DNA from: Macrostomum lignano
Taxonomy: Eukaryota
Length of the DNA stretch: 64,000 bases
Reading direction: 5' to 3'
Assembly: GCA_002269645.1 (NCBI GenBank)
Contig: NIVC01000561.1
Location: 310,001 to 374,000 of the forward strand
In this document: piece after piece, positions 12,662 to 62,999 of the stretch
Layout: every line of letters begins with the position of its first letter
Numbering within the stretch: the stretch's first letter is position 1
Program-made: the position numbers and the translations under genes
Notes under the pieces: model-generated
Told to the model about the DNA's origin: nothing
Seen by the model: only the letters and a program-made list of their open reading frames with translations
Database searches by the model: none

Positions 12662-12664
12662 GCC

Positions 12665-12697
<33 letters not shown>

Positions 12698-39977: not shown

Positions 39978-42900
39978 TCAATCCAGCGGCTCCTCCTGTA
40001 GCCCAGGGAGCTGCTGCATCTCGCCAGGCTCAGCCTCGGATTGCAGACTCTCGGCTTCATCCTCAGCTTGCAGACTCTCAGCTTTATCCAGGGCCAAGAG
40101 CAGCGCATCACGGGTGAAGCCTTCGTCAACGAACATCTGAAACAGATGGAGGTTCCGAAGCTGAAATCTTTGCGCAAAAATGTGCGGGACTAAAAGTTGT
40201 GGTTGTCATTTTTTAACTTGAGAAACACCGAAAGTATTTAAAAAATAATGCTTTTGAATTACCGACTGGAAGAAATTAGAAAAGAACGATATGGAAGCTT
40301 TATCTGACTGCAAGAACTGCAGATGCGGTTGGCTGCCTGCGCTGTCGAAAAGCCACTGCGGGATTTTCTGTCGTATTTCCTGCAGTCCCTCAGGAGACGC
40401 AGCTGCGGCACGAAGGTTGCGGATGTCTTCAGGAGGCAGCTGTCGAAACAAATCGCAAAGAATTTCAGAACTGAACTCCATCATTAGGCCTCGCAATTGT
40501 GGGCTTGCAATCATCTGAAAAAATGTTAATTCGAGAAGCATTTGCAGGTGAAGTCAATGAATGTGGAGTGCGACAGTCAAAGTAAAAAATTGAATAAAAT
40601 CTTACTAATGAAATGACATAATTATTGTACTCAGGAACTTCCTGTAGAATCTGACCCATCCTTCCGCATAGATAGCGCCAAGTCCCGATTTCAATTATTT
40701 CAGCCACATCACAAGCCTCATGAAGAGCCTTTACGTCACATCTCTGGGAGAGTCCAGCAATCATTTCCTGACCAAGTTGCGTCTCAAATGTAGCTGATTT
40801 CCGACCAGCCAGCGACTCATGCAACTGGACAAAGTCTACTGGTAGCTGAAATTCCTGATTGTTAAAATTGAATCTGATAATAAAATGTTGATTTGGAGCA
40901 GCTGGCAGGAATCCAAAATCCAGTTTCTCTTCAAACTGAAAATGGAAAAAGGTAGCGGAGTCGGTCTCCTCCAAGTGCCGCCACACGCGCTCCTTCGCCT
41001 CGCCCACCGACAGCAGCTCGCTGCCTCCGCCAGGACTCTCCGGACACTCGATGCCGCTGCTCTCCTGGCCCGTCAGTTCTGCTGCAGCACCGGCCGCATC
41101 CAGCGGTGCGTGAAATTTGAGATGCGCCATCAACCTGAGGCTCTCTCTGGCTGATCTGGCGCAGTCTGGCAGCTCACCGATCAGCTGCAGCAGCTCCGAC
41201 AGGTGCTCGGACTCCGACTGACCCCGCCGGTCCGAGCCGAGTTTAAGCAGGCAATGCCTCACCAAGCCGTAGATTGAGCTGTAGCCTGAGTACCGCTGCG
41301 CATCACGTGACGAACCGAAACCCATCAACAGCAGGAAAGGCTCGAACCGCACAGAGTTGCTCGCATTTTCTCTCAACTGGCCTTGGAATTGATGCAGCCA
41401 GCGAGGAAGCTCGTCAATCACCCCATTGACCGCATCCACAATGTCCTTCTTCGGGAGTTGATCCCTCTCAAAGTACACGTCGGCATCTCGTAAGAAGAAG
41501 TGCTTCATGCACACTGTATCGGAGGCTGAGCTCTCCATCGTCTCAACCAGCAGCTGCAGCGACTGCCGCACGAGTTGCAGCAAGTTGTCTGGCTTCCATT
41601 CTTCTTCCGGCGTCTCGTCGAGCATGTAGAACAGCAGGTTCTTGGCCATGTACGTCTTCAGACCGCTCACCTTCATCTCGATGCTGATCACCTTCTTGAT
41701 GAGGAACTTGACGAGGATGAAGAACTGGCCCTGCACGGTGGTGAGGCTGTGCATGACGGCTCTCTCCAGCAGGGTTGTGCTCACCCGCATGCAGCTGCCA
41801 GGCGGTTTGTGAGGAGGCGATGCAGCGACCGCGTGACACTTTGGAGAGTCGCCGAGAGCCTCCTGGTTGAGCTGGTTCAGGATGCGCTGAGACATCTGGG
41901 ACGGCTGGCCTCTGCGGTTTGAGTAGCCGGGCTGCAGCAGCTCGATGCGGGGGTAGCGGCAGCAGGGCACGGCTTGTATTCGATCGATATTGACATGCAA
42001 ACGATGATTAAAAGGCTCTGATGAACGCATTGTTGCCATGTTAGGTCCTGTGGCTGTGAATGTGAAAAATCTAGTGCTTAGCCTCCTAAACGCTGCATAA
42101 GAACTAATACAACTACGATGACTGCAATATTTACCAACTTTAATTTATCTTGATTCCAGCAAGCACTCAATGCTTTGCACACAGCCCCGCCAGCAAGCAT
42201 TCATTCTCATCTTTTATTTCTCTGGTTACTTTAGCAATCCACATACAAGAAATGCCTTTTAAATTGCTCTTTACTTTCGTCGAGTGCAGCTGGAGAGCAG
42301 AGAGCAGGGAAAGGCAACAAGCAAGGCGGAAAGTGTCTGCCTACTGACCACCCACCTTGAATACAGCAGTCTGTGAGATTGCCCAGAGTTGACGCAGATA
42401 ATCCTGCCAGTTTTGCACTGCCGCATCATCTGACATGAACTCCCTCCTGTAGGCTCCACTGCCCGCTTCAATATGGGTCGAAGCGCACAAAAAAGCCAGA
42501 GCTCATTGCAACTACCTGCTAAACCAGAGGGCCCATGACACTAAAAAGTCACTAGTTTATAATGATCACATGCTCAGGAAGCACTGAGTTACTCACAGCC
42601 ATGCTCATAGTAGGCGTGTCCGTTCTCGCACTGCACTCGGATCGCATCTCTGCCGCAGCCACTGCAGGCGGTCCAGCCGGCAGAGCCGCAGTCAAGGCAC
42701 AGCAGTCTATCGGACTCCATCCAGGTGACGTCAATGTCGGAGTCCCAGCTGATCTCCCCGTTCAGAGTCTCCAGGCTGCTGCCCAATCCGTCTGCGAAGC
42801 TGCCGAACACAAAAATGTCCTTGCAGTCCATCAGGTCTCTCAGGATGTCCTGCAGCGCGGCCGCAGCGCCGCTCTGAACTGCCGCGTTGGCCTGCTTGAA

Positions 42901-44796
42901 CCCGGCGGCTCGCATGGCTTCGGACAGCCGCGAGCTGAACTGGCGCTGCTCCTCCGCTGACCGGACGGCCGGCGCTGCGAGCGACGCTGCGGCTGGGCGG
43001 GGCGGCTCTGGGGCTGAGAAAAATGCGGAAACTATACTGATAATCGCATCCGATGGCATTTCCGCTCCAGAAGCAAGCAGCAACTTTCTGATTGAGGCAT
43101 TGCCTGGAAACACAGTAAACAACGACAGCATAAGGCCCATCGGTCCTGTCTGATCCCAGCTGACACCAGCATCGATCAGAAGTTGCACCGCCTCTGTGAA
43201 ACCAGCCATTAAGGCAACTGCAAACCACTCTGAGCTGTTTTTTTCATTGATGTCGGCAGAGGCGTCAATCAGCATCCGAGCCATGGACAGCTGCCGACAC
43301 ATGATGGCCTGCCTGACCAAATCCTTGTTGTTATTGCTGCTCATATCGGCTGAAGCTCCAGCTCGAATCAGCTCGCTGACGATCACCGCGTTTTCTTTAT
43401 AAACAGCCAGGGCCAGGGGAGTTCGGCCATTGCTGTTCAGCAGGTCGACCCTGGCTCCAGCTCTGAGCAGCATGGCAACCAGCTCTGCTCTTCTTTTACG
43501 AACTGCGTAATGCAACGGCGTGTTGCCATAACAGTCTAGAGCGTCGACATTCGCCCTGGCGCCGATCAGCCGCCTCGTGATCTCCTTAAAACCCGGATCA
43601 AAAACGGCGAGATGAAGAGGCGCTAAACCAGTATCTGATGATGAATCAACATTTGCTCCAGCTCTGATGAGAACTGCGGCTGCCTCAGTCCCACTGTCAC
43701 TTTCTGCCGCACGGTGAACAGGAGTGAAGCCTCTTTCATCCGTAATATCGACACCCACACCTGCGCTAATGAGCTGGCTCATGATATCAATTTTCCCGAA
43801 TCGTGCAGCCTCATGCAGTGGAGTTGAACCACCAGGGCAGTTCGGGTTCCTCCTGTCGGGATCTGCAGCGGCACTCAGCAATATTCGAACGATTTCGGCA
43901 TTGCCCAGAATCGCCGCGGTGCTCATCGCCGGCCCGCTGTGGCTGTTAAGAAGACGAAGCTGAGCTGAGCTGAGAAACCGCAACTCTGTATATAGACCCT
44001 GCTGCAATGTACTCCGACTAAGAGGAATTTTATGCGGAGCGAAGAGCAGCTGCCGAAGGGCCTCCATCTCGAGCTCCGATGCGCAGCAGTTGGGGTCCGC
44101 CCCGGCGGCAGTCAGGGCGTCCACAGCGCCAGCCTGTCCGAGCAGGACGCACAGATACAGCGGAGTCGGCAGTGGCCCGGCGGCTCCAGAGACCGGTGGC
44201 GGCTCCTGACGGCTGTCGGTGGCGGCGCAGGTCGGTCCGGCAAGCAACCGCGCGATGTCGTCGCCGGACTCAATGATCCCGGCCAGGTGCATCGGCAGGG
44301 CGCCGCTCACCGTCCGGACGGCTGGACTCGCTCCGGCTCGCAGCAGCAGCCGCGTCAGTCGCTCGCTGCCACCGTGGACGGCTTCGTGCAGCGGCGTAGA
44401 GCCGTCAGCTGCGGCCAGGTGCATCGGCAGGGCGCCGCTCACCGTCCGGACGGCTGGACTCGCTCCGGCTCGCAGCAGCAGCGGCGTCAGTCGCACCCTG
44501 CCAGCGTCGACGGCCTCGTGCAGCGGCGTAGAGCCGTCAGCTGCGGCCAGGTCGACGTTCGCCGAGGCCTCCACGAGCAGCCGCGCGGCCTGTGCGTTTC
44601 CTAGAAAGCTGGCGACGTGCAGGAAGGACCTGCCGTCAGAGTCCTGCTCGTCAGGACTGCCGCCACGGCTGAGCCACTCAGTGAGGAGGCCGCAGTCTCC
44701 CGACTCGAGCGACTCGAGCACCGAATCGAACTGCGGCGGCTCAGGTGGGCCAAGAGGTCGCCCGGATGTGACCGGAAGCAGTTCCTGTTCCGTCAT
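39978..44796 (-). CDS. Ankyrin-repeat Mab-21/cGAS-like nucleotidyltransferase (cGLR-type), copy A; exons 44796-42597, 42053-40606, 40514-40263, 40160 (or 40136)-39978; about 1360 aa, about 13 ankyrin repeats
   Basis: TPLH ankyrin repeats; FVFGSFADG...DSDIDV NTase motif; third acidic residue in NIDRIQAV; Mab-21 C-lobe RVSTTLLERAVM, FFILVKFLIKK, GLKTYMAKNLLFYML, MKHFFL; phase-consistent GT-AG introns. Confidence 0.85.
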
Positions 44797-47544
44797 GACT
44801 TTCTGAGGTGCACTGTGCTCCGTTTCTAGAAAATTATGTAAACATTTAAAGCTTCACCAGTTGCTAAGTTTTCCAAAATAAAAAGAAAGATACAACAGAG
44901 TCGGTGAGACCACTTTGACTCCACAGCTGTTTCTCTTCTCTCCTCACTTCCCACTCTGGGCTGCCAACTGGCTACCATACATACTGACTTGCTTTCAGGC
45001 TCAACTTCAGTTTTTGCTCTGTTGTGACTTTTGTGTGCTATATTAAACTAAGGCGGGCTGCGGGCACCCCAGTGCAACGCCTTCGGTGACATTGTCCCCG
45101 CATCCATGCGCGTTGAGCCGTCCTGCTCATTGAGCACATACAAGCGCGCCAATACTATACTGCACTCATGCTCACGCTCACAGAGGGTGCACAGCGACCC
45201 TGATTTTCAAATCGTCAGGCATGTGCAGTCTCTTTGCTTTGGGGGTTGGTCTTCATGGCCGTGAATCGCACGACAACCCCCTGCCAATTTTTTGCACATA
45301 GGCACAAAAAAGCGAATTTATGCAAATAAATGCCTATGAGACTACTGTAAGTAAAGATAATACGTATAATATATGGCTGCTGTAGTGCGCTTGTGTGCTG
45401 AGAAAATCATTGTCTCATGGACCGTATATTTGAGCTACTATATAGTATCACTGCCGACGTGCGGCTACAATGTTACGCAATAGTTAAGGGACAAGTGGCA
45501 GTGCACGTTGGTCGAGAGGGCCATTATAGTTAGTCATCACAGAAGAGTAAAGGCATAGATTGGGCGTACACTACAGCTGCCTAAACCAGCCTATTTTTGT
45601 GAATGCATTTTCCAGTACATACAAAAGCCACTCGACGCGTGAAGTAGGCGCTTGGTGACGCGTGGGTGGAGCGTTCATCGTGTAAATTTTTAGCCTGTTG
45701 AACTGAAACTTAATCATTCAATAAATTTAGAGCTTCTACTGCAACTGGAATTGGTTAACAATGCCCTTGCTATATTGCATTGTGTTTCGTGTTTCGTGTT
45801 ATGAAGCCAAATAAATGCTTTCGTCGGTAGAGTTCTGTTCATTCGCATTCTCCTTCGCTTCCAAAAATGACTTGACTCAGTTCTACCTAGACTAACACTT
45901 CAGAACCTCTCTCTCTGACAATGTCCCCAATTGCCTCTGTGCTAATTAGTTAAACAAGTCTATCTCGATCTTCAATCCTGAACATGAATGTTCTACTTCT
46001 ACTGCTTCCTTGATGGTTACAGTCTCAAACAGATGTTAATCGCGCAATTCCGTTCAGCAATTCATTGAAGAGGAGAGGCACAGGCTACTTACTTATCAAT
46101 ACTGTCGTACTTCCATCTTGTCGTGAGTCTCCAGGTGATCCCTAAGTTGGACCGGGATGTTGCAGTCTCGGGCTGATTCAAATAAAGAGGTTCCTTATAA
46201 GTCTTTTGAGTCTAGATGTGGTTAGCTGCTGACTCTGCATATCCTCTGAGTACATGTAGATTAGTCCGGACTAGGAAGTTTGGAGAATGGGGAAAGAGCG
46301 AGAAGAGGAAGGAGGAGGAGGAGGAGCGAGAGCTGCGCATTCTCACTGAACGCAATTGCGTACATTTATGTTTTCTGTAACGCTTTTCATTGGTGTTCGC
46401 TTCACACAATGGGATATTTACTGTTGCACTAGCATGTGCTGTACTTTCCAGACAGGGAGAAAATCTGTCTAATCTACCCTAAGTCGGGTAACTCATACAG
46501 AATGGGGTACTATTTGGAGTGGGGGTAGAGCCTGTGACTAACTCATCATCAGAACCATGGCAACGTGCGCTTCTGTTCATGCGATCGTCATGAGACTGCA
46601 TTCGTACATTGACGTCCCACGTACAATGTTTAAATTGCACTTTTCCCTACCTACATGAGTAAGGCCTCAGCTTGTAACGGTGCCTTGTATGCAGACCTCG
46701 CTTTTATGGCTTTCAATTGTGTCTTACATAGGGAGTCAAGCTTTGCTCAAGACCACAAGTTTACATCCTTATTATCATCCTAATCTCGTCTTTAGGCTCA
46801 TCCTTGAACTCATTCACCATTTTTCTCCCCAATTAATGTCGATTATTATTGATAATTAGCGATTGTAATATTGATTATTGATTGACTCATTCATTCCCTA
46901 ACCCCTATCCAGAGGTAATTGATCTCAGACACGAGACACAAGACAAAATACAAAATACAACAGACAGAAGACAAAATACAAAAGGCAGAAGACGGAAGAC
47001 AAGCTACAGAAGACAGAAGACCGCACGCGAGCGCCTCTACAAAGCTGCAACGCAGCATCTGTAACGCCAACACAGGTGCGTAACCATCAACCCGGATCGA
47101 GGGGCTGAACATTATCCTTAATTTACCTCCGCTCCATTTATTTATGAGGGCGGAGGCTATGAAATCCGCCTCCCGACGTTTTGGAGATGAAACGATAAAA
47201 ATTAGTCACTGAACCCTCTGGCCTCGATGAAAAGTCAAATCCCGCATATCCGTCGTGACCTTTTCAACGTCCACATCCAGCAGGCGATGTGGATAGCCGT
47301 CTCTCCACTCTCAACATCAAGCGGGGCTTCCAGACCGCCATCCTTGGTCGAGACAGCACGGCCCACTAGATGTTGTGAACTGGCGTAGCCAGTGCATTCG
47401 CTGCTCCGCTGACGGCTCGCGGTGGAGCGGGCATCGCCATCTTTCACGAGGGCAAGACGCTCTTTCAGGAAAGACTGCAGCTCCACGAGAACACCTCGGT
47501 TTTTCGCCATTGAGCAGCTGTGTGCCCAGAAATTTCAATATGCA

Positions 47545-47850
47545 TTTTACACTGATAGCTCGTAGTCAAGCCGTTATCAAGGCCTCAACCACGGTTAAAA
47601 TTTCCACTGAAACTACATGTATAGCGCATATCTCAATGCTGCCGCAGTTTTAATCTCTGTCAGTCCTTAACAGGGATCAGAATCACCTGGACACCCGGTC
47701 ACAGCAATATCCTAGGTAACGAGCCCGCAGCTTATCTTGCCAAGGAGGGCAGCAACATGGACGGCTGGAGAGGCTACCCAATGCCTAAGCCCGCAAATCA
47801 CCCGCCATATAAACGGGTGGCTCCACCAGCAACACCAGCCCCTTTGGACA
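47545..47850 (+). mobile_element. Degenerate RNase H fragment of a non-LTR retrotransposon
   Basis: YTDS..QAVIKA and IRITWTPGHSNILGNEPAAYLAKEG (WxPGHxxIxGNExADxLAK motif), broken by stops and frameshifts. Confidence 0.65.
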
Positions 47851-48424
47851 TGCAATGCTTGCGATATGAAAAATAGTTGCTTCTAGACAATCCTACTTGG
47901 AGCGATTTGAGAATTTGAAGCTACCTTCGTGTCCTACCAGACTCCCCAATAGCCGCAGCGGCTGGTGATGAAGAACTGATACAAGTGATTGATTAACAAG
48001 AGTGAAAACCATTCCAGATAGAGAGTCTGATTGAGCACAAATTCTTTTTGCTCAGATAATAACGGCTGATGGATAAGGTTTTGATCCTTATACTTAACTC
48101 GGTAAATTTAGACTATTGATTCAAATTAATTTAGTTAGCACTGGTTAATGCGAATAAACTTTTACAACCGAATCTCGCCATGAGCCGGACCTCAAATACT
48201 TGAAGTTTAATAAGAAGTTAAATAAGACAACGGTGGAAAAATGGCCGGGAGTTGGGAAAGAGACGGGAAAGGCGGAAAAGTGAAAATCAGATGGCGAAAA
48301 TGCAGTTCTACTTATTGTCTGTCGACCCCCCGCTTCCAAGACGTTTGATGGGTGTCTGTAGGCCTTAGATCCTTGGAAGAGTGAACTTGATGAGGTGTTC
48401 TCATCTAGTTATTTTGACCTTTTT

Positions 48425-48550
48425 CGACAGGGGCGCCCACTAAGAGACAGGGGCGCCCACCAAGAGACAGGGGCGCCCACCAAGAGACAGGGGCGCCCAC
48501 CAAGAGTCAGGGGCGCCCACCAAGAGTCATGGGCGCCCACCAAGAGTCAT
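48425..48550. repeat. 20-bp minisatellite (gggcgcccaccaagagacag), about 6 copies
   Basis: Direct inspection; same family as 14715-14890. Confidence 0.85.
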
Positions 48551-49371
48551 GGCTGCCACGTCTCACTCTGATTGCGGTGAGACTGGCTTGTACGATTGGC
48601 CCATGTGACTGATGCCTTCGCAATCGAAGGTTCCATTTTTTCTTAGAACTGATGAGTGCTTGAAAAAAATTTACTCGTAATGCACAGCAAACATTGCATT
48701 TTGTATCAATAGTTTACATTTATCCACGAGGTTAAATAGAGGTTTACTAGGCTACAAAATTTGTCTTTTGTTGGTGTTAAGTTGCTGACAAACCAATGAA
48801 ACAATTAATGTTCGTGTTAGAAAATTTTAAATAATGTCCGAAAATACTGATATAACAATAATATTAAATTTACAACACCTAATTCATTCAGTATGTATAT
48901 AAAATTGGATAAAAAAAGTCAGACTTCAGAGCAGGTGTTTCACGCAAAACTGTCAGATTTTTTTTCACAAATAACCATTTAAACGTTTTTTGACACACAC
49001 ACATGCGAATGTATATAAAATGGCATACTGCGAGGGTAGCGATAGTAAATCTTTCGTCCCATTGTGTGGGGACTGGGGAGAGACAGCAGAAAGTACATTC
49101 AAACAGTAGATTTCCCAATTGTGCATTAGGAAGATTCAGAGTGAAATCTCTATGAGAATCAGTAAAAGTTCAATGAAACGTAGTGTGAGATGCAGGTATG
49201 AGAGTATCAGCAAGGGGATGCCTCTCACCCGCAATCAGTCAACCACCTCTGCTCCAAAAGTGACAACAATTCCGCATACTGCAGTGGTCAAACACAGGTT
49301 ACAGTCTGCTTACCGATAAGGCAGAAAAGCATCTTGCCGCTGAGCTGACAGGCTGAAGAGAAAAATGAAAC

Positions 49372-52300
49372 TCAATCCAGGGGCTTCTCCTGTAGCCCAT
49401 GGATGCCTACTGTATCGGAGTCTGAGCTTCCCATCATCAGCTGCATCCAGTGCTGCTCGAGTTTTAAAAAGTTCTGCAGCCTCCTTTCTCTTTCCGCTCC
49501 CTCGTCGAGCAGGCAGTTGCTCTGCTGCATCTCGCCAGGCTCAGCCCCAGCTTGCAGACTCTCAGCTTCAGCCAGGGCTTTGTCCAGGGCTCGAATCATG
49601 CTTTGCGCAACCAGCTGAAGCAAATGAGGTTTCATAAAACTGAAATATTTGTTAAAAATTTTGCTGTACCAAACGTGGTGGCTGATTTTTTACCTGATTA
49701 AGACACTGAAAAAAATTCATAAAATTATTTCTTTTGATTTTCCTATTTGTCATAACATCAAGCATGCATCGATTTATAGATAATGAGCACTTACCGATCT
49801 GCAAGCTTCATTTGAAAAAAGTAACTGAAATGGTTGTCTGGATGGGGTGTCAAAAGACAACTGCAGCATTTCCTGCATCAGCTCCTCAGGAGAACCAACT
49901 GCAGCACGAAGGTAGCGGATGTCTTCGGGTGGCAGCTGTCGATAAAAACGGCGAAACGATTCAATATACAGATCCGAAGATCGATCCCGAAATTTCGGGT
50001 TTGCCAGCAGCTGAAAGTAAAAATTGAAATCGAGATGCATCGGCAAGTGAAAGTCAATGAAATGGACAATAAAAATAAAATGAAAAATTCTTACTAATGA
50101 AATGAAATTCTGAAATAACTCAGGATTCGCCTGATGAATCACATCCAGATTGAATTTGAATAGATTGAAAAAAGTCCCGTCGTCAATCATTTCAGCCCAA
50201 TTAAAAGCGTCAGATCTCTGGCAAACTTCAGAGACGGTTGCTGGAGAATTTCTTATGATATTTTGTCTCTCAACTAAAGCTGACTCCCGACCAGTCAGCG
50301 AATCATACAGCCGGAAAAAGTCCAGTAGAAGCAATTTTAAATTGTGTAAATATTTCTTTGAAGCAGCTGGCAGAAATCCAAAATCCACTTTATCTTGAAA
50401 AAAAAAATGAAAAACGTTGGCAGAGTCGGTCTCATGTAGGTGCCGCCACACGAGCTCCTTCGCCTCGTCCACCGACAGCAGCTCGCTGCCTCCGCCAGGA
50501 CTCTCCGGACACTCGATGCCGCTGCTCTCCTGGCCCGTCAGTCCTGCTGCAGCACCGGCCGCATCCAGCGGTGCGTGAAATTTGAGATGCGCCATCAACC
50601 TGAGGCTCTCTCTGGCTGATCTGGCGCAGTCTGGCAGCTCACCGATCAGCTGCAGCAGCTCCGACAGGTGCTCGGACTCCGACTGACCCCGCCGGTCCGA
50701 GCCGAGTTTAAGCAGGCAATGCCTCACCAAGCCGCAGATTGAGCTGTAGCCTGAGTACCGCTGCACGTCACGTGACGTACAAAATTCGTCCAGAAGCTGG
50801 AAAGGCTGGAACCGCACAGAGTTGCTCGCATTTTCTCTCAGCTGGCCTTGGAATTGATGCAGCCAGCGAGGAAGCTCGTCAATCACCCCATTGACCGCAT
50901 CCACAATGTCCTTCTTCGGCTGCTGACCCTTCTTGAAGTACACGTCGGCATCTCGTAGGAAGAAGTGCTTCATGCACACTGTATCGGAGTCTGAGCTCTC
51001 CATCATGGCAACCAGCAGCTGCAGCGACTGCCGCACGAGTTGCAGCAACTTGTCTGGCTTCCATTCTTCTTCCGGCGTCTCGTCGAGCATGTAGAACAGC
51101 AGGTTCTTGGCCATGTACGTCTTCAGACCGCTCACCTTCATCTCGATGCTGATCACCTTCTTGATGAGGAACTTGACGAGGATGAAGAACTGGCCCTGCA
51201 CGGTAGTGAGGCTGTGCATGACGGCTCTCTCCAGCAGGGTTGTGCTCACCCGCATGCAGCTGCCAGGCGGTTTGTGTGGAGGCGACGCAGCGACCGCGTG
51301 ACATTTTGGAGAGTGGCTGAGAGCCTCCTGTTCGGAGTCTTCCTTTGGAGAGTGGCTGAGAGCCTCCTGTTCGAGCTGGTTCAGAATGCGCTGAGGCATC
51401 TGGGACGGCTGGCCTCTGCGGTTTGAGTAGCCGAGCTGCAGCAGCTCGATGCGGGGGTAGCGGCAGCAGGGCACGGCTTGTATTCGATCGATATTGACAT
51501 GCAAACGATGATTAAAAGGCTCTGATGAACACATTGTTGCCATGTTAGGTCCCGTGGCTGTGAATGTGAAAAATCTAGTGCTTAGCCTCCTAAACGCTGC
51601 ATAAGAACTAATACAACTACGATGACTGCAATATTTACCAACTTTAATTTATCTTGATTCCAGCAAGCACTCAATGCTTTGCACACAGCCCCGCCAGCAA
51701 GCATTCATTCTCATCTTTTATTTCTCTGGTTACTTTAGCAATCCACATACAAGAAATGCCTTTTAAATTGCTCTTTACTTTCGTCGAGTGCAGCTGGAGA
51801 GCAGAGAGCAGGGAAAGGCAACAAGCAAGGCGGAAAGTGTCTGCCTACAGACCACCCACCTTGAATACAGCAGTCTGTGAGATTGCCCAGAGTTGACGCA
51901 GATAATCCTGCCAGTTTTGCACTGCCGCATCATCTGACATGAACTCCCTCCTGTAGGCTCCACTGCCCGCTTCAATATGGGTCGAAGCGCACAAAAAAGC
52001 CAGAGCTCATTGCAACTACCTGCTAAACCAGAGGGCCCAGGACACTAAAAAGTCACTAGTTTATAATGATCACATGCTCAGGAAGCACTGAGCTACTCAC
52101 AGCCATGCTCATAGTAGGCGTGTCCGTTCTCGCATTGCACTCGGATCGCATCTCTGCCGCAGCCACTGCAGGCGGTCCAGCCGGCAGAGCCGCAGTCAAG
52201 GCACAGCAGTCTATCGGACTCCATCCAGGTGACGTCAATGTCGGAGTCCCAGCTGATCTCCCCGTTCAGAGTCTCCAGGCTGCTGCCCCATCCGTCTGCG

Positions 52301-53241
52301 AAGCTTCCGAACACAAAAATGTCCTTGCAGTCCATCAGGTCTCTCAGGATGTCCTGCAGCGCGGCCGCAGCTCCGCTCTGAACTGCCGCGTTGGCCTGCT
52401 TGAACCCGGCGGCTCGCATGGCTTCGGACAGCCGCGAGCTGAACTGGCGCTGCTCCTCCGCTGACCGGACGGTCGGCGCTGCGGCTTGGCAGGGTGGCCT
52501 TGGGGCTGAGCAGAATGCGGAAATGAAACTCATTAACTCTTCTGGTGCCATTTCTGCTCCAGAAGCAAGCAGCAACTTTCTGACAGAGGCATTGCCTGGA
52601 AGCATGGTAAAAAACGACAGCATGAGGCCCATCGGCCCTGTCTGATCCAGCCTGACACCAGCATCGATCAGAAGTTGCACCGCCTCTGTGAAATCAGTCA
52701 ACAAGGCAAGCTTAAACCACTCTAAGCTCTTTTTTTCATCTATTTCGGCAGAGGCGTCAATCAGCATCCGAGCCATGGACAGCTGCCGACACATGATGGC
52801 CTGCCTGACCAAATCCTTGTTGTTATTGCTGCTCATATCGGCTGAAGCTCCAGCTCGAATCAGCTCGCTGACGATCTCCGGGTTTTCTTTATTAACGGCC
52901 AGGGCTAGGGGAGTCAGGCCATTGCTGTTCAGGAGGTCGACCCTGGCTCCAGCTCTGAGCAGCATGCCAACCAGCTCTGCTCTTCTTTTATGAACTGCTG
53001 TGTGCAGCGGCGTGCAGCCGTCAGCTGCGACCAGGTCGACATTCGCCAAGGCTTCCACGAGCAACCGCGCGGCCTCTGCGTTTCCGAGAAAGCTGGCGAC
53101 GTGCAGGAAGGACCTGCCGTTAGATTCCTGCTCGTCAGGACTGCCGCCATGGATGAGCCACTCAGTGAGGAGGCCGCAGTCTCCCGACTCGAGCGACTCG
53201 AGCACCGACTCGAACTGCGGCGGCTCAGGTGAGTCCGGCAT
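49372..53241 (-). CDS. Ankyrin-repeat Mab-21/cGAS-like nucleotidyltransferase, copy B; exons 53241-52101, 51557-50095, 50010-49795, 49614-49372; about 1020 aa, about 5 ankyrin repeats
   Basis: Same motifs as copy A (GSFADGW...DSDIDV, NIDRIQAV, KTYMAKN); homologous intron positions and phases; intact frame. Confidence 0.85.
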
Positions 53242-55254
53242 GACTTTCTGTTCTGTTTTTTATTGATTTTTGGTGCCACAAAAGTTTATTGCCAGTTTTT
53301 TTGAAAGGAGCTCTAGCTCCTGTGCTTAAAAGAAGTATTTTAGTACTTACGTATATTGTATTGTTGTATTGTATTGTATTGTATTTTTCTGGTTTTTTGC
53401 TTATCCAGACAGTGATTCGTCTCTGTAAGTGGAAGCAAATTAAAAAGCGAGCGAGCAAGGTTTGTCCGTGCACTTGGATAATTATTTTGCACTCCAGACT
53501 TGTTTATGCCATCCAGACAAAAAGAGCCCTCAGAGTGGTCACGTGAGTCACTAGGAGAGAGATGAATCGGAAAAGTGTTCTTATTCTTGTGTACAGTCTG
53601 CTTATGCTTCTGCTCTCCTTGCTGTTCGACCCTTCGAGAGACCGAAGTTCAGTCTTGACGACCTTGTTTCGAACCTTTAATTTGGGTTGACTTATTTTTA
53701 TTGTTAACTTTTCTTAGTTGCATGGAATAAACTACCGGTAGAATCAGCTGGCTTCATCAATTAATTAGCAAAAAACGTGTCACGCTGTAGTCTATAGATG
53801 CAGACACCAAGCAGACAGCTGAAGAGCTAAACATTAATGCAGGACAATACTCTACAAAATGGGTAGACAGACCGCCACCCTACTTGTAGCTATTTAAACA
53901 CGCATAGAAATATGTACTCCGTATTTTAGCCCTGATGCGCATAAAACAGACAGGAATACTACCTTAGACTCTGGAGATTATTACTTTTATCCCCTAAATT
54001 ACCCTTAAATCACCCACACGGAACATTAACAAAAGCTGAACTACTCGTCATACCAGCTGACATAGAAGTTAATTTAAATAATAAACACAAAATTTAAAGA
54101 TCGAACCGAGAACCGCATGCAAAAATCAATCAAATCATCAAATCAGGGCAACAATTAGCCAGGGTCAAAGTCAAAATCGATCCAACACAGCAGATGCTTC
54201 AGTGCAATGAGCAAGCGCACAGCTTCACAAATAAAATTCGGGTGGAATCCTACCTCTGGCGGCTCTTATCCCAATCATTGCAGGTGCTCTGGGAGCCGCA
54301 GGCTGTGTAGCTGGAGGGGAAGCCTGTGGCAATGGAGCTCACCAATCAGACATGGAAAAAAATTCAAGAGACAGAGATCAAAGTAAAAGCAGAAGAGGAT
54401 TCGACACGTTGGGATGGCCGAGAAAGCTGTGATGGTTCTGTGAGCGAGTCTGAAATTGTCAAAGCCATCATGACATTGCATGATAAGGATTTTTAATAAT
54501 GGGATGAGGATGAAAATTCCATTTTTACAACCTTATATTAACTTAGCGCTATTGATGATATGCAACAACAGTTTACGCTGCCTAAAGCACATCAAGCTGA
54601 AGGTTTTTTTAATTCATTTGAATAATAACAGCAGGGATAAGCTGTTAAAAATAATGGAGCCGCTTCCTAGTTGACAAATACACGACTCACAGGTGAAAAT
54701 GTAACCTGCCCAGAGGATGAACAGGAAGATTTTTTAGCCTGCCACTGAAGAAACTACTTTTGCACACATAATCATAATATTACATTAATTACACTGTCCC
54801 AAACAAAGAAGTCGCAGACATAAATGATTATAAAGACTGTATGTATTCAATAAGTTTTTGAAGCTTGGGATTTTACTCTGACAAATTAAACTGTAAGATC
54901 TTGAATTATGAACTCAACGTTCAACATGCAGATTCGACATACAGGTAAATATAATTATTATCGTTTACGTTTTCAGGCATTTTGTTTCAATTGGATGTGC
55001 AAACGAGTCCGTTCTCAGTGCTGATTTTAACAAATTAAAGAAATAAACTCGTGCTCGTGTTGATTTCTTGGAAACTCAGCTCTTCTTAAACTGACAGTTC
55101 TATCAAAAATAATTGGCAGAATATTTTCTGTCTTTTTCGGCCATTGTTTATGTAAAACGGCCTTTTTAGCGCCCCAAAAGTTGTTTTGGTAGTCTTTGTT
55201 TTATTGAGGTGCGGAATCCTGCCATGTGGGTTAAAGCTGCTCGAATAATTTCAT

Positions 55255-56400
55255 ATCTGTAAGGTGACACTGCTGTCTAACACACAGGTGACACTGCTGT
55301 CTAACACAAAGGCGACACTGCTGTCTAACAAACAGGTGACACTGCTGTCTAACACACAGGTGACACTCCTGTCTAACACACAGGTGACACTGCTGTCTAA
55401 CACACAGGTGACACTGCTGTCTAACACAAAGGCGACACTGCTGTCTAACAAACAGGTGACACTCCTGTCTAACACACAGGTGACACTCCTGTCTAACACA
55501 CAAGTGACACTGCTGTCTAACACACAGGTGACACTGCTGTCTAACACACAGGTGACACTGCTGTCTAACACACAGGTGACACTGCTGTCTAACACACAGG
55601 TGACACTGCTGTCTAACACACAGGTGACACACCTGTCTAACACTCAGATGACACTGCTGTCTAACACAAAGGCGACACTGCTGTCTAACACACAGGTGAC
55701 ACTGCTGTCTAACACACAAGTGACACTGCTGTCTAACACACAGGTGACACTGCTGTCTAACACACAGGTGACACACCTGTCTAACACACAGGTGACACTG
55801 CTGTCTAACACAAAGGCGACACTGCTGTCTAACACACAGGTGACACTGCTGTCTAACACACAGGTGACACACCTGTCTAACACTCAGATGACACTGCTGT
55901 CTAACACAAAGGCGACACTGCTGTCTAACAAACAGGTGACACTGCTGTCTAACACACAGGTGACACTCCTGTCTAACACACAAGTGACACTGCTGTCTAA
56001 CACACAGGTGACACTGCTGTCTAACACACAAGTGACACTGCTGTCTAACACACAGGTGACACTGCTATCTAACCTACAGGTGACACTCCTGTCTAACACA
56101 CAGGTGACACTGCTGTCTAACACCTTGACACTGCTATCTAACACACAGGTGACACTGCTGTCTAACACACAGGTGACACTGCTGTCTAACACACAGGTGA
56201 CACTGCTGTCTAACACACAGGTGACACTGCTGTCTAACACACAGGTGACACTGCTGTCTAACACACAGGTGACACAGCTGTCTAACACACAGGTGACACA
56301 GCTGTCTAACACACAGGTGACACTGCTGTCTAACACACAGGTGACACTGCTGTCTAACACACAGGTGACACTGCTGTCTAACGCACAGGTGACCCTGCTG
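55255..56400. repeat. 24-bp minisatellite (gtgacactgctgtctaacacacag)
   Basis: Direct inspection; shorter copy at 61967-62215. Confidence 0.95.
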
Positions 56401-56538
56401 ACTACTGCCAGTAGCTTCAATGCAAAGTTACTCAAATAGCTGTATGATCAACTGTCAAACTCAGCAAATGAGAGAAAGTCACATTTATCGAGCAGCAAGC
56501 AGACACTCCAAGTAGGTTGGTAGACTCTTAGGGGGGGG

Positions 56539-56650
56539 GCGGTAGCCCAGTGGTCCGGCGCGGCGCTCTGATGTGCCAGCGGCCCGGGCTCGATTCCAAG
56601 TGCAGTCGCATTCATTTGGGGCTGAATTGGAATCTCGGCTTGGCTCTGCT
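56539..56650 (+). mobile_element. tRNA-derived SINE-like repeat, copy 2 (head only)
   Basis: tagcccagtgg A-box, gggctcgattcc B-box. Confidence 0.5.
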
Positions 56651-58350
56651 CGAGCAATGACAGAATTGAAGGGACAACGAGTTCGCTAGATTTCTCGAAT
56701 TCATACAAAAGGAGCCCGAGCCCGATGAGCATCTGCCGCTCCTGCGGGAAGGTGGCGTAGATATCAGCGCCATGGACATCGCCGAGATTGACAGCCTACC
56801 AGCAGACGAAGCAGATGATCAGCCATGGACAGCGGTTGAAGACATTCCTCACAGAGGAGAATCTTCAGCGCAATTTGCATACCATTCCGAATTCGGTGCT
56901 CAACCAATACAAGAGCAAGACACCCGAACGTGCTGATGCTGTTGAGGTCGTCGGTAAGACTGTAGTATCGACGGAGGCTGCCTATTCTGTTGGTACGAAG
57001 TTTGCCTTCAACAATTGCACCTGTCACGGATAAGCAAATTGTACTCGTAGAAGTATTGAAAGAATAAGAACGTCAGTCTAGTTTCTTATTTTTATTTAAT
57101 GACTTTCAGTACTTTTATCGACCAGTAGGATGTTAGCCTACAAAAAATTAACATGAAATGCTGACACTGCTTTGTACTGTTGATTTTGCAACTCCTATGC
57201 AGTTTAATTATTTAAATCTTAAAATAAAAGTTTAAATTGACTGACTGATGCAAGATACGCTTTGCAAGATGCTGGATAAAAACTTGGCTTCAATTAATTG
57301 GTTGCGTTGAAATTGGAATTCTAGGCAATGGCCGGCCATTGCCATGGGACATTGCCATGAAGAGAAATTTTGGGCAATGTCGCTTAAAGCGCGCCAGGGT
57401 GCACGCAGCCCCCTGCTTCTAACTGAAAAATATGAGACGCTTGAAGCTTTAAAACTTCTTCGAAAGCAGATTAAAGGTCAATACCAAGGCTGGTGTCTCT
57501 CAGACCCTAACAGAAGTACACACTTATGCCAGAGACTGCAGTTAAGATGATGCTGCAGCTGCATCAGTGCCACTCCCAGTGTCTCGGACTTCTGACTCAA
57601 TGGTTACTTACTTCGAGCAGGTGATGTGAGCACCCAGTGTCCTTGATCTCAAATCTTGAATTCTGATGAGCTCATTAATCTGATTATATTACTGAGTTTG
57701 CGAGCTTAGTTGACAGAAACAGATCAGCACATAATCCAGAGAATTATTAAATTTATTTTTTTAGCGAAAATGAATTATGATTTATTAAAAGCTGTTATAA
57801 TATACATAAAGTCGTTTGCTAAGATTAAAAATCTATCTAATCTCGAAATTATTGATAGTTGTGTAGAAAATCTAGAAAATATCAGTGGCCATGTAAAAGC
57901 TCAGTAAAAGAAGCAAAAGCTACGGGGGACATGGCAAGGCTTTGTTCCCCCACCACCAATAGTCAACCGTTATGAAAATCAATAATTTTGCTTCACTCTG
58001 CCAAAATGAGTGCTAACAGCACCGATTCCCAAAATGATGAAGGAATTCAGTCATGCGGAATTCTTGGCTTTTCCCCCCACCATAAAATCCATGGCGACAC
58101 CCCTGGAGAACACAGAAGAAAGTTACGAATAAAATGAATAGAAAATTTAAACGAAGGATGATAAATATGAATTGTCTGGTGTGCAGAAGAAAACTTAAAA
58201 AATAATTAACAAAAATCTCTGGTTGATTAAAAATGAGTTTATGGCTCTGGGAGGGGCACGGGTCCAGCCTCTTTATGCTGAGACTTCCCATCCGGACAAA
58301 ATCATGTGAACTGCAATGTCAGTCAGCAGGGATCAAAATCCATAGAGCAG

Positions 58351-61300
58351 TCAGTCCTCAGCATCCTCTTGTGACCCCGGCAGCTGCCGCATCTCGCCAG
58401 CTTCATCCTCGGACAACTGCCTCTTAGCTGCATCCAGCGCCATGGGCAGCACCGTCGTGATTATGTTTAACTTTCTTTCATCCTGAAGCTGGAATGGTCG
58501 GAAAGACACAACAGTGGAATTCACTATAACTTTGCTGACAATTCAATCACCACCTGCTGTTTCAAGGATTTACAAAATTCAAAATTTGTACAACTGCTGC
58601 AACTTTACAAGACTAAATCATTTTGTATAATTTAATTCAAACTCGAAATACGTACGAATTCCCTCAGTTCTTCATCATCATACAATAGTTCGTCATCCAC
58701 TAAAGACTGCAGGAACTGCTGCAGGGTTTGCGGATCCGCGGCTGCGGCTCTGAGCTTGCGGAGTACTTCTTGAGCTTCGTCTACAGCTGCTACCTTATCC
58801 TGGAGCAGGCAATACGATGCACTTGCTAAGCCGTTAAAAAAGTAACTCCAAACCTCAGGAAACTTTTCGGCCTGAAAATTCAGAGTGGTCACAAAAGTCA
58901 TGGTAGAAACTCTCAGCAGAATACCCAGCATTACGGCGCAATCTTACCATAGAAAAAACAAAATCGAAAATTTGCGGAGCCTGCTCACTCCATATAAGCA
59001 GCCAGTCTACATCGGGAGGTAAATTCTCTTCATCCAAAAAATTGCTGGAACCAGCTTGAATCATTTGCAGATTGGGCTCAACATTCTGAGTCTCAGTTGA
59101 AGCTGCCTCATCCTGAGCAGCCAGACTCGCAAGAAGTTTTCGAAAATCTATTGGAGGAATTTTCGACCAGAAGAATTCCGGCTTCCATCTGACGCCTGAA
59201 AAAAACGATAAATAATTTCTTGACGCGAGATGGCAGAAATCCAAAATCCAATTCCTTTTTGAACCGAAACTGAAGCACTGCGGCAGTGTCGGTCTCCTCC
59301 AGGTGCCGCCACACGAGCTCCTTCGCCTCGCCCACCGACAGCAGCTCGCTGCCTCCGCCAGGACTCTCCGGACACTCGATGCCGCTGCTCTCCTGGCCCG
59401 TCAGTTCTGCTGCAGCACCGGCCGCATCCAGCGGTGCTCCGACTTTGAGATGCGCCATCAACCTGAGGCTCTCTCTGGCTGATCTGGCGCAGTCTGGCAG
59501 CTCACCGATCAGCTGCAGCAGCTCCGACAGGTGCTCGGACTCCGACTGACCCCGCCGGTCCGAGCCGAGTTTAAGCAGGCAATGACTCACCAAGCCATAG
59601 ATTGAGCTGTAGCCTGAGTACCGCTGCGGGTAACTTACGTGTAAGATATGGGAGTTCATCAACAGCTTGAAAGGGTCGAACCGAACAGAGTTGGTCGCAT
59701 TTTTTCTCAACTGTCCTTGGAATTGATGCAGCCAGCGAGGAAGCTCATCAATCACCCGATTGACCGCATCCACAATGTACTTCTTCGGCTGCTGACCCTT
59801 CTTGAAGTAAACATCGGCATCTCGCAGGAAGAAGTGCTTCATGCACACTGTATCGGAGTCTGAGCTCTCCATCATCTCAACCAGCAGCTGCAGCGACTGC
59901 CGCACGAGTTGCAGCAACTTGTCTGGCTTCCATTCTTCTTCCGGCGTCTCGTCGAGCATGTAGAACAGCAGGTTCTTGGCCATGTACGTCTTCAGACCGC
60001 TCACCTTCATCTCGATGCTGATCACCTTCTTGATGAGGAACTTGACGAGGATGAAGAACTGGCCCTGCACGGTAGTGAGGCTGTGCATGACGGCTCTCTC
60101 CAGCAGGGTTGTGCTCACCCGCATGCAGCTGCCGGGCAGTTTGTGAGGAGGCGACGCAGCGACCGCGTGGCACTTTGGAGAGTCGCCGAGGGCCTCCTGG
60201 TTGAGCTGGTTCAGGATGCGCATAGGCATCTGGGACGGCTGGCCTCTACGGTTTGAGTAGCCGGGCTGCAGCAGCTCGATGCGGAAGTAGCGGCAGCAGG
60301 GCACGGCAAGTATTTGATCGATATTCACAAGGGTAGGCCAAAGATTTCTCATTTCTGATGGTTGATTTGTCGCCAAGTTGGGTCCCGTGGCTGTGAATGT
60401 GCAAAAGGGTGCGTTTGGCTAAAGAAACGCTGCTGCAGGCAACAATGCTGACATAATGATAACAACTTCAATACATCTTGATTCCAGCAAAAGCCCTTCT
60501 TTTGCATCAAACCTTGTTACGGAGCGACGCCACCAATCTATGGATTCTCTATCTGTTATTTCTGTAGCTACTATAGTAATCCAGACACACTAAATGCCTT
60601 TACTTTACTTTGCACAGTGCAGCTGACGAGCAGAGAGCAGGGAAAGGCAAATAACTAATGCGGAAAGTGTCTCTGTCTGTCTCAGACCTACCACCCTGAC
60701 AGTAGTCTGTGTGAATGCCAAAACCTGACGCAGTCCTGTAGGCTCCACTGCCCGCTTCAAAATAGAGCCCATAAAGCAGGGTCAAAGCGCACGAAACAAG
60801 CTGGAGCTCAAAGCGACTGTCTGCTAAACCAGAGAGAGCCCACACACCCAGAACGCCACTGGTTTATACCCTCACATGCTCAGTTGATAAAAGCACTGAG
60901 CTAATCACAGCCATGCTCATAGTAGGCGTGTCCGTTCTCGCACTGCACTCGGATCGCATCTCTGCCGCAGCCACTGCAGGTGGTCCAGCCGGCAGAGCCG
61001 CAGTCCAGGCACAGAAGTCTACCGGACTCCATGAAGGTGACGTCAATGTCGGAGTCCGGACTGATCTCCCCGTTCAGAGTCTCCAGGCTGCTGCCCCACC
61101 CGTCTGCGAAGCTGCCGAACACGAAGGTGTCCTTGTCGTCCATCAGGTCTCTCAGGATGTCCTGCAGCGCGGCCTCAGCGCCGCTCTGAACTGCCGCGTT
61201 GGCCTGCTTGAACCCGGCGGCTCGCATGGCTTCGGACAGCCGCGAGCTGAACTGGCGCTGCTCCTCCGCTGACCGGACGGTCGGCGCTGCGGCTGGGCTG

Positions 61301-61862
61301 GACGGATCGGGGGCTGAGATTGCAGAAAAGAAGCTGGTCAACGCTTCTGGTGCGATTTCTGCTCCAGCGGCAACCAGCAACTGTCTGACTGAGTCATTGC
61401 TTGGAATCATCAGCCTTGTTTGATTAAACCTGACCCCAGCATCGATAAGAACTGGCACCACTTCTGTGAAACCGGTCCCTATAGCAAGTACAAACCACTC
61501 TAACATGTTGTCGGCAGAAGCGTCAATCAGCATCCGAGCCACGGTCGGCTGCCGACACTTGATGGCATGGCTGACCAAATCCTCATTGTTGTTGCTGCTC
61601 ATATCGGCAGAAGCTTCAGCTCGAATCAGCTCGCTGACGATGTCCGGGGTTCTCATATAAACAACAGCCATTGTCAGGGGAGTTTCACGCCAGTTGTTCA
61701 GCAGTTCGACCCTGGCTACAGCTCTGAGCAGCATGGCAACCAGCTCTGCTCTTCTTTTACGAACTGCGTGGTGCAACGGCGTGTTGCCATCGGAGTCTAA
61801 AACGTCGACATTCGCCCTGGCACCGATCAGCAGCTTTGCGATCTCCTTACAACCCGTATCGG
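58351..61862 (-). pseudogene. Ankyrin-repeat Mab-21/cGAS-like gene, copy C; exons ?-60909, 60390-58948, 58871-58656, 58488 (or 58482)-58351; no in-frame ATG and an apparent 1-nt frameshift near 59199-59205 (pseudogene or assembly error)
   Basis: Same NTase and Mab-21 motifs (GSFADGW...DSDIDV, NIDQILAV); exon 3 is 216 nt as in copy B; homology to A ends at about 61862 (DTGCKEI) against a repeat; frame switch needed between FLPSRVKK and IDFRKLLASL. Confidence 0.7.
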
Positions 61863-61966
61863 TCCTTTTGGGGACAATGCTGTTGTGGTAGCTAGTCTTT
61901 GTTTTAATAAGGAGCGAAATCCTGCCCTGTGGATTTCAACTGTTCTGTATGATTTCATATCATCAA

Positions 61967-62215
61967 GATGACACTCCTGTCTAACACACAGGTGACACTG
62001 CTGTCTAACACACAGGTGACACTCCTGTCTAACACACAGGTGACACTGCTGTCTAACACACAGGTGACACTGCTGTCTAACACACAGGTGACACTCCTGT
62101 CACCTAACTGACAGGTGACACTCCTGTCTAACACACAGGTGACACTGCTGTTCAACACACAGGTGATACTGCTGTTCAACACACAGGTGACACTGCTGTC
62201 TAACACACAGGTGGT
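61967..62215. repeat. 24-bp minisatellite, same family as 55255-56400
   Basis: Direct inspection. Confidence 0.9.
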
Positions 62216-62990: not shown

Positions 62991-62999
62991 GGCAGCAAT

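Follow-up and report, generated by a model that had tools for sequence, protein, structure and literature searches.

Does a 64,000-nt stretch of the Macrostomum lignano genome (positions 310,001 to 374,000 of contig NIVC01000561.1, assembly GCA_002269645.1; hereafter the window) encode nucleotide-signalling enzymes fused to ankyrin repeats, or proteins that share the fold of such enzymes and serve another purpose? An earlier note on this DNA had claimed three head-to-tail paralogues on the minus strand, and all three are present where it placed them: c1 (39978-44796), c2 (49372-53241), and c3 (about 58352-61860). They are almost certainly ankyrin-fused nucleotidyltransferases (NTases) of the Mab-21/cGAS-like receptor (cGLR) type. 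The layout starts at the N terminus with ankyrin repeats, whose number varies, and a linker; the cGLR catalytic domain comes next, its GS loop, DxD strand, and third Asp intact and with a four-cysteine (Cys4) insert, and a conserved helical extension and a highly variable, partly acidic tail complete the protein.

To define gene structure, open reading frames (ORFs) were scanned over 38-64 kb. Three minus-strand pairs were obtained, in each of which a second long ORF comes after an ankyrin-rich one (44796-42589 and 42039-40465; 53241-52093 and 51543-49774; 61776-60901 and 60376-59108). Within each pair the two ORFs are joined by a phase 1 GT-AG intron (intron 1; 543 nt in c1, 543 nt in c2, and 518 nt in c3), and the frame stays open across the spliced joint in all three copies. 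The joint reads GGCT/gtgagt...ttcacattcacag/CC in c1 (42597/42053) and c2 (52101/51557), exactly the phase 1 junctions that had been proposed for these two copies, and GGCT/gtgatt...cacag/CC in c3 (60909/60390). The idea that an intron joins the two ORFs therefore held, while the accompanying idea that this intron divides ankyrin from enzyme did not, since it interrupts the NTase N-lobe, with the DxD strand encoded by exon 1 and the third catalytic Asp by exon 2. Exon 1 carries the GS loop, the DSDIDV strand, and the Cys-rich insert, and exon 2 carries VNIDRI or VNIDQI together with the whole helical lobe; the NTase core is thus split by intron 1, and the active site is present in the spliced product only. 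Each of c1 and c2 has two additional short introns in the tail. Collinearity in self-comparison, conserved intron positions and splice sites, and a common strand identify the three copies as a tandem array, and the upstream flanks of c2 and c3 are likewise collinear (55190-58215 versus 61893-64000). A tblastn search with c2 found no further copies within 1-39 kb of the window. At the other end, 63707-64000 is 85% identical to 57911-58215, the stretch just 3' of the c3 tail, so that a fourth gene copy may start just past the window end. The features of the three copies are as follows.

42597-44796, minus strand: c1 exon 1, with a long ankyrin array (Pfam Ank, nine stretches), linker, and first half of the N-lobe, placed by ORF, Pfam, and the donor GGCT/gtgagt; FGSFADGLG at 42807-42781, DSDIDV at 42744-42727, and Cys4 insert CLDC-x8-CSGC at 42699-42655
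44280-44552, no strand assigned: 132-bp tandem duplication in the c1 ankyrin region, 2.1 copies, 95% identical, with the peptide ...AADGSTPLHEAV...GASPAVRTVSGALPMHLA repeated
42054-42596, minus strand: c1 intron 1, 543 nt, phase 1, GT-AG, 99-99.5% identical to c2 intron 1
40606-42053, minus strand: c1 exon 2, with VNIDRI at 41994-41977 (third catalytic Asp), RVSTTLLER at 41787-41761, KHFFLRD at 41505-41485, the conserved helical extension LPDCARSARESL at 41172-41137, and a variable region after DFGFLP (40920-40903)
40515-40605, minus strand: c1 intron, 91 nt
40263-40514, minus strand: c1 exon 3, tail, MIASPQLRG...FFQS, bounded by c2-homologous splice sites TCATTA/gtaaga and ttttcag/ATG
40137-40262, minus strand: c1 intron, 126 nt
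39978-40136, minus strand: c1 exon 4, acidic tail ...ALDKAESLQ...EEPLD, then stop
52101-53241, minus strand: c2 exon 1, with a short ankyrin array (Pfam Ank) and the first half of the NTase N-lobe, equal to residues 1-380 of PAA80900.1; FGSFADGWG at 52311-52285, DSDIDV at 52248-52231, and Cys4 insert at 52203-52159
51558-52100, minus strand: c2 intron 1, 543 nt
50095-51557, minus strand: c2 exon 2, with the third Asp (VNIDRI at 51498-51481), Mab-21 C-lobe, helical extension, and variable region
50011-50094, minus strand: c2 intron, 84 nt
49795-50010, minus strand: c2 exon 3, tail, from the exact reconstruction of PAA80900.1
49615-49794, minus strand: c2 intron, 180 nt
49372-49614, minus strand: c2 exon 4, tail, ending ...LQEKPLD and stop, from the exact reconstruction of PAA80900.1
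60909-61860, minus strand: c3 exon 1 remnant, with the first half of the N-lobe preceded by about four ankyrin repeats; FGSFADGWG at 61119-61093 and DSDIDV at 61056-61039
60391-60908, minus strand: c3 intron 1, 518 nt
59108-60390, minus strand: c3 exon 2, second half of the NTase and C-lobe intact; VNIDQI at 60328-60311, stop at 59110-59108
58352-59107, minus strand: c3 tail relics resembling the end of exon 2, exon 3, and exon 4, out of frame, recognized by three-frame reading, splice-site homology, and tblastn

The spliced c2 model is identical, residue for residue, to GenBank entry PAA80900.1 (BOX15_Mlig002049g3, "hypothetical protein", 1020 amino acids, four exons). A brute-force search over GT/AG pairs rebuilt this entry exactly from exons 53241-52101, 51557-50095, 50010-49795, and 49614-49372, and the same entry (P0001), located on NIVC01000561.1 of GCA_002269645.1, was the best match of a protein search. 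The GenBank annotation of the assembly is RNA-seq-based, derived from a genome-guided transcriptome of StringTie/TACO and de novo transcripts (PMC5730564). Since the annotation is transcript-derived and the c2 model identical to it, the ankyrin-to-NTase junction at 52101/51557, for which a splice check had been proposed, has transcript support, and c2 is transcribed and correctly spliced. A 1330-amino acid model from another M. lignano assembly (P0025) bears on splicing and gene order around c2. This model fuses ...ETDSAN, which in c2 lies at 50389-50412 and is followed by gtgttc, straight to the exon 3 sequence LLANPKF, pointing to an internal GT donor whose use skips the variable stretch of exon 2; a variable tail segment could thus be included or left out by alternative splicing. 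Overall, P0025 comprises a c2-like gene, an exon matching 47495-47250, and then a c1-like ankyrin start, and therefore indicates the same gene order at a second locus or haplotype. The matching short ORF in the window (47250-47495, minus strand) lies between c2 and c1 and is a 94% match to the internal segment of P0025. This arrangement suggests that the array is transcribed by read-through or as a polycistron, or else that 5' exons of c1 lie at 47250-47495; co-transcription is conceivable because M. lignano resolves polycistronic precursors by trans-splicing (PMC5730564).

Assignment of the catalytic domain draws on motifs, fold, and profile comparison. The sequences GSFADG[W/L]G, DSDIDV, VNID[R/Q]I, RVSTTLLER, LVKFLIKK, KTYMAKN, and KHFFL are present in c1, c2, and c3, and the GS, both Asp residues of the DxD, and the third Asp are kept in all three, bearing out the claim that every copy holds all three acidic catalytic residues. 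When c2 was aligned with 12 M. lignano paralogues that are 40-48% identical to its core, S55, D76, and D78 were invariant and D146 nearly invariant across the 13 sequences; G-H, C-C, and C-H motifs and many C-lobe residues were also invariant. In PAA80900.1 the acidic triad is D334, D336, and D404. An AlphaFold2 model based on this alignment (pLDDT 74, pTM 0.76; 72-86 on the strands with the acidic residues) was compared by Foldseek to the Protein Data Bank (PDB). The top 50 matches were all cGAS or cGLR at a probability of 1.00, with Cv-cGLR1 best (8gjw; E 1.5e-5) and mouse, human, and pig cGAS and Sp-cGLR1 also recovered, over alignments of 224-427 columns (mostly 380-420) and with a target-normalised TM of about 0.53. 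A family profile searched against 1.8 billion representatives matched 351 proteins at E<1e-3, of which 74 reached E<1e-30. Pfam scanning of distant profile matches detected Mab-21_C in 10 of 10, Mab-21 in 7 of 10, and C-terminal tetratricopeptide repeats (TPRs) in several. The family alignment and 16 distant Mab-21/cGLR(-TPR) matches were aligned by hhalign at 99.8% probability (E 2e-29) over 301 columns covering both lobes, with the GS, DxD, and third-Asp columns in register. The Pfam model Mab-21_C is borderline on the proteins themselves (23.6-24.3 bits against a threshold of 24.1; 23.6 for c2). The Foldseek, hhalign, and borderline Mab-21_C results together support the cGAS/Mab-21 fold that had been put forward for the array. 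Ankyrin repeats were detected by Pfam in every copy (c1, Ank_2 E 1e-56 and nine PF00023 stretches; c2, Ank_2 E 5.5e-22; c3 remnant, Ank_2 E 2e-14).

Published work defines cGLRs by the motif h[QT]GS-[X8-20]-[DE]h[DE]h-[X50-90]-h[DE]h, by homology over two lobes, and by predicted structural homology (Li et al. 2023, PMC9980059). In c2 the motif takes the form VFGS-x20-DIDV-x65-IDR, with spacing inside the published windows; the motif, the two-lobe homology, and the structural homology were all found, with two deviations at non-catalytic positions that are weighed below. The N-lobe carries a Cys4 insert, CLDC-x8-CSGC, after the DxD strand and ahead of the third Asp (42655-42699, 52159-52203, and 60967-61011, minus strand). 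Of the sequences inspected, c1-c3 and their nearest relatives (P0002, P0003, and P0025) have it, and the other paralogues do not. The insert could be a zinc knuckle, or a ligand- or zinc-binding element; AlphaFold2 confidence is low in this region.

A catalytic domain of this kind might perform other chemistry. The proteins could be active NTases that make linear 2'-5' oligonucleotides as OAS does, that signal via a receptor other than STING, or that nucleotidylate proteins or RNA recruited by the ankyrins. The GS...SDxD motif and the pol-beta fold are common to OAS and terminal nucleotidyltransferases. Several cGLRs made products that match no known standard (Li et al. 2023, PMC9980059), and flatworms have been reported to be without STING (PMC4117786, PMC13563047). 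Set against this are the top 50 structural neighbours, which include no OAS and no poly(A) or terminal uridylyl transferase, the match of the C-lobe to Mab-21_C, and the fact that sequence does not reveal the identity of a product. Such alternative chemistry is judged unlikely. A more specific candidate prompted by FGS...SDIDV, namely a terminal uridylyltransferase or poly(A) polymerase, was rejected on the C-lobe and on the top structural neighbours, all cGAS or cGLR.

The cGLR-type identity having been assigned, the condition of the two other copies was examined. The four-exon model of c1 (44796-42597, 42053-40606, 40514-40263, and 40136-39978) is open over 1352 codons with no internal stop, its tail exons having been placed by splice-site homology to c2. 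c1 is intact, though unannotated. The annotation pipeline removed transcripts overlapping repeats (PMC5730564), which may be why c1 is absent from GenBank. About 1 kb of c1 ankyrin sequence has no counterpart in c2 in self-comparison, and the 132-bp duplication marks a recent expansion of the ankyrin array in c1; ankyrin repeat number is therefore labile. For c3, the claim of a complete single protein failed, as the copy has no ATG, is truncated at its 5' end, and has a frame-shifted tail. Neither an ATG nor an upstream exon for c3 was found up to 64000. Its ankyrin homology to c1 ends at about 61860, approximately 100 bp from a 24-bp minisatellite, and the approximately 2 kb between the c2 start and the corresponding minisatellite of c2 have no counterpart in c3. 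After DFGFLPSR, c3 runs to a stop, and the conserved downstream exon structure goes on in another frame; the apparent frame shift lies at a T-run near 59200, upstream of the tail relics. c3 is probably a decaying copy with catalytic exons still intact. A chimeric-looking 981-amino acid model (P0017) was considered as a guide to c3 tail splicing and rejected, its junction having no AG acceptor in c3.

Comparison of the three copies separated conserved from variable regions. By BLAST blocks, c1 and c2 are 94-95% identical in DNA, reaching 96-99.5% in NTase-coding and intron 1 windows and far beyond chance, and c3 is 86-92% identical to the other copies. In 200-bp windows, c1 and c2 are 99-99.5% identical in intron 1, with values of 86-92% for the ankyrins and 60-70% for the tail, and c3 is 94-98% identical to the others in the conserved core exons and 67-83% in the intron. 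The c1/c2 core looks recently homogenised, by gene conversion or (partial) duplication, and purifying selection has acted on the c3 core through most of its history. The catalytic domain is under purifying selection. Ratios of nonsynonymous to synonymous rates (dN/dS) were 0.18-0.30 in the C-lobe (dS 0.08-0.13), 0.39-0.67 in the N-lobe (dS 0.05-0.16), 0.65-0.90 in the shared ankyrins (dS 0.22-0.35), and about 1 in the tail of c1 versus c2 (dS 0.44). Counts of nonsynonymous and synonymous differences (Nd/Sd) in thirty-codon windows identified variable patches with Nd/Sd about 3 (dN/dS near 1) in the two loops that precede the third-Asp strand and follow NSVRF, as well as in the ankyrins and the tail; site tests would need more than three sequences. 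Positive selection was considered for these patches and is not supported, dN/dS near 1 being roughly neutral. The pattern of a shared core with variable ankyrins and tails, as described in the earlier note, is thus real in both dN/dS and window identities, whereas its description of the array as rapidly evolving comes down to dN/dS near 1 in ankyrins and tails, which fits relaxed constraint as well as diversifying selection; rapid evolution driven by selection is not demonstrated. Gain and loss of repeats, together with near-neutral substitution, account for the changes in the ankyrin array and tail.

These data also bear on whether the array is largely non-functional, consisting of duplicated pseudogenes or of assembly redundancy in a neopolyploid, repeat-rich genome. 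The missing start codon and frame-shifted tail of c3, the lack of a called gene for c1 and c3 in the GenBank record, and the near-unity dN/dS of the tail would be consistent with this, and the Mlig_3_7 assembly holds 180 Mb of blocks that are at least 95% identical (PMC5730564). The differences in ankyrin number and tail between copies argue that they are not assembly duplicates. Further against it, c2 is an exact match to a transcript-derived annotation; c1 is open over its whole length of four exons, the GT-AG sites of which are conserved; dN/dS in the core is 0.2-0.4, and c3 exons are far better conserved than the c3 intron; the gene model from the other assembly keeps the order of a c2-like followed by a c1-like gene; and the gap at c1 in GenBank may stem from the dropping of repeat-overlapping transcripts. 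A largely non-functional array is accordingly considered very improbable.

The array belongs to a large cGLR family that is apparently lineage-restricted. Homologue matches of the window proteins in the protein search were from M. lignano wherever the source names an organism. The 74 strongest profile matches (E<1e-30) are clusters at 50% identity, and all eight named matches that were sampled (E 1e-217 to 1e-18) are from M. lignano, most being ankyrin-fused and the longest 3379 amino acids. Most platyhelminths were reported to be without cGLRs beyond Mab21-like proteins (Li et al. 2023, PMC9980059), and the part of the domain table of that study covered here includes two ankyrin-containing M. 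lignano cGLRs (PAA67649.1 and PAA58690.1). In its biochemical screen of 140 enzymes, five M. lignano paralogues (samples 89-93) were cloned and purified. These five are 40-48% identical to the c2 core, and one, PAA57558.1 (BOX15_Mlig007108g1; P0004 in our alignment), is 48% identical. c2 itself (PAA80900.1) does not appear in the portions of Tables S1 and S2 of the same study covered here, an absence that carries no weight. An ankyrin-fused M. lignano cGLR family is thus already known, being listed in a published catalogue and tried in its screen with no activity reported; the exact c1 gene model, the c3 decay, the tandem and mosaic organisation, and a Cys4 insert specific to the subfamily are new. 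The term "uncharacterised" applied in the earlier note overstates the case, as c2 is annotated in GenBank and the published cGLR catalogue already covers this family together with ankyrin-fused members.

Several observations weigh against the reading of the array as ankyrin-fused cGLR signalling enzymes. The Note field is blank for the five M. lignano samples of the screen, where active enzymes are labelled (e.g., "01, Pd-cGLR"; PMC9980059), and the five paralogues are therefore not among the 15 active cGLRs. The screen used pooled nucleic-acid ligands, and the Table S3 sequences of the five samples begin at or near the catalytic domain; this inactivity is consequently weak evidence if ankyrins or a ligand other than nucleic acid are required. 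cGAS and STING have been reported lost in Schistosoma mansoni (PMC4117786) and in Schmidtea mediterranea (PMC13563047). No M. lignano protein was among the best 120 matches to the human STING ligand-binding domain, and none was among the best 120 matches of a search with a seven-species STING alignment, both searches being too insensitive to exclude STING; the matches listed were all from other animals, mostly vertebrates. No published work specific to Macrostomum with cGAS or STING was found. At the level of sequence, the Pfam N-lobe model PF03281 (Mab-21) gives no direct match, and hmmsearch with the family profile gave no match among PDB sequences, where single-sequence phmmer gave one weak match (Sp-cGLR1, 8gjy; E 0.01); given this near-empty result, comparison by fold and by profile-profile alignment was needed. 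The motif departs from the cGLR consensus at two non-catalytic positions, with F for [QT] before GS and R or Q after the third Asp. c1 has GSFADGLG (42781-42807), where c2, c3, and all 13 aligned paralogues have GSFADGWG, such that Leu replaces a family-invariant Trp beside the GS loop. Finally, c2 is the sole gene called in the GenBank record within 10 kb on either side.

Some of these points would suit proteins that use the Mab-21 fold as a scaffold or ligand-binding adaptor, as in MAB21L1/2 or MiD49/51, with ankyrins that bind proteins and without a part in immunity or second-messenger signalling. The published screen flagged none of its five M. lignano paralogues as active, cGAS-STING is reported absent from other flatworms (PMC4117786, PMC13563047), the STING searches returned no M. 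lignano protein among the best 120 matches listed, and Mab21L1-type proteins have no known activity even though their putative active site is complete (Li et al. 2023, PMC9980059). Such a role is less easily reconciled with the strict invariance of GS and DxD, and near invariance of the third Asp, in at least 13 paralogues with no more than 40-48% identity to the c2 core, or with the alignment of the catalytic columns to bivalve-type cGLRs. Developmental Mab21L genes, moreover, are highly conserved and present as single copies, and a large lineage-specific family with variable, recognition-like modules is unusual among them. We regard the scaffold explanation as doubtful.

Weighed together, identity as ankyrin-fused cGLRs combined with a signalling-enzyme mechanism is somewhat favoured as a single statement, and the mechanism on its own is put at even chances. 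As in other cGLRs, the enzyme would stay inactive in the absence of a bound ligand or partner, the ankyrin array and/or surfaces of the catalytic domain would do the binding, and the bound enzyme would convert NTPs into a nucleotide second messenger to be read by a downstream receptor. The N-terminal ankyrin array may serve as sensor, partner-binding module, or autoinhibitor. We infer the second-messenger synthesis and these roles of the ankyrins from the way characterised cGLRs behave, and the pattern-recognition role is likewise putative. A bolder proposal, held here as speculative and improbable, is that Macrostomum, in contrast to flatworms examined to date, runs a greatly expanded cGLR-type sensing network without canonical STING, in which specificity would reside in ankyrin arrays and tails (through repeat gain and loss and exon-level variation) and gene conversion would maintain a uniform catalytic cassette. 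If true, this would place the logic of an immune-receptor array, like that of NLR/LRR clusters, on a nucleotide-signalling enzyme. It is commonly stated that flatworms have lost cGAS and STING, and M. lignano is an exception with at least 74 clusters, many ankyrin-fused. The locus offers a transcript-supported model (c2), an intact neighbour with a long ankyrin array (c1), and a decaying copy (c3) as internal rate control, and is thereby material for the study of cGLR function in an animal in which transgenesis works (PMC5730564). Active proteins would reveal how a cGLR is gated by repeat modules appended to it; inactive ones would provide a large example of a catalytic triad retained without a signalling role.

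The surroundings of the array are repeat-rich. A dispersed repeat of approximately 300 bp, with copies 81-84% identical (37798-38114, 57375-57748, and 63062-63353), flanks the array units, and a 24-bp minisatellite occurs twice; when translated, the minisatellite yields long spurious ORFs on both strands. Satellite and minisatellite arrays fill much of the first 37 kb, giving rise to many artefactual long ORFs and to strong GC-skew swings at 12-18 kb. The remaining features of the window are listed below.

55262-56404, no strand assigned: 24-bp minisatellite, consensus AGGTGACACTGCTGTCTAACACAC, 47.8 copies, upstream of c2
61969-62213, no strand assigned: 24-bp minisatellite AGGTGACACTGCTGTCTAACACAC, about 10 copies, approximately 100 bp past the 5' truncation of c3
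723-7911, plus strand: exons of a calpain-type gene (Peptidase_C2 723-1241, Calpain_III 5395-5799, C2 domain 7507-7911), with satellite-filled introns
32449-36167, plus strand: EF-hand exons (EF-hand_7 E 8e-14 at 35574-36167), probably of a calmodulin-like gene
1500-3200, 9400-10300, 11450-17900, 18300-25250, 26950-27450, 34800-35600, and 36267-36817: satellite and minisatellite arrays

Among known systems, MAB21L1/2 and MiD49/51 have the Mab-21 fold and the Pfam Mab-21_C region in common with the array proteins. They are conserved single-copy genes with developmental or mitochondrial roles and without known signalling activity, and MiD49/51 are without the catalytic triad. The flatworm family, in contrast, is large, divergent, and lineage-specific, and keeps the triad. 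Vertebrate cGAS has the same bilobed NTase fold and catalytic triad, and dozens of its structures are among the top Foldseek matches at about 9-11% identity; in the flatworm proteins the cGAS position holds no H-x5-CC-x6-C zinc thumb and the basic N-terminal tail of cGAS is missing, and an N-terminal ankyrin array, the Cys4 insert, and a C-terminal extension of approximately 400 amino acids are present instead. Cv-cGLR1 (8gjw) is the best structural match and Sp-cGLR1 (8gjy) the only PDB sequence match, with identity to the flatworm proteins of about 10-20%. These two enzymes, in contrast to the flatworm proteins, have demonstrated ligands and products (2'3'-cUA for Cv-cGLR1; dsRNA, leading to 3'3'-cUA, for Sp-cGLR1). 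Bivalve and cnidarian cGLRs have the GS-x-x-[DE]G...SDxD style in common with the array, but their repeat modules are C-terminal TPRs, compared to N-terminal ankyrins here. The domain logic is reminiscent of the ankyrin-fused cGLRs of Stylophora pistillata (Li et al. 2023), in which ankyrins are likewise appended to a cGLR core; the likeness is by description, the phylum is different, and the fusion is probably independent. The coral ankyrins were read as protein- or ligand-interaction modules (Li et al. 2023, PMC9980059). Closest are the M. lignano cGLRs of the same study, some of them ankyrin-fused, which share GSF[AS]DGWG...SD[IV]D[VL], PCC.YP, CHAV, RVSTTLLER, and the LPDCAR extension. The tandem arrangement and mosaic evolution of c1-c3 are absent from the description in Li et al. 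2023, and the c1-c3 subfamily is set apart from these relatives by its own Cys4 insert and its own tails.

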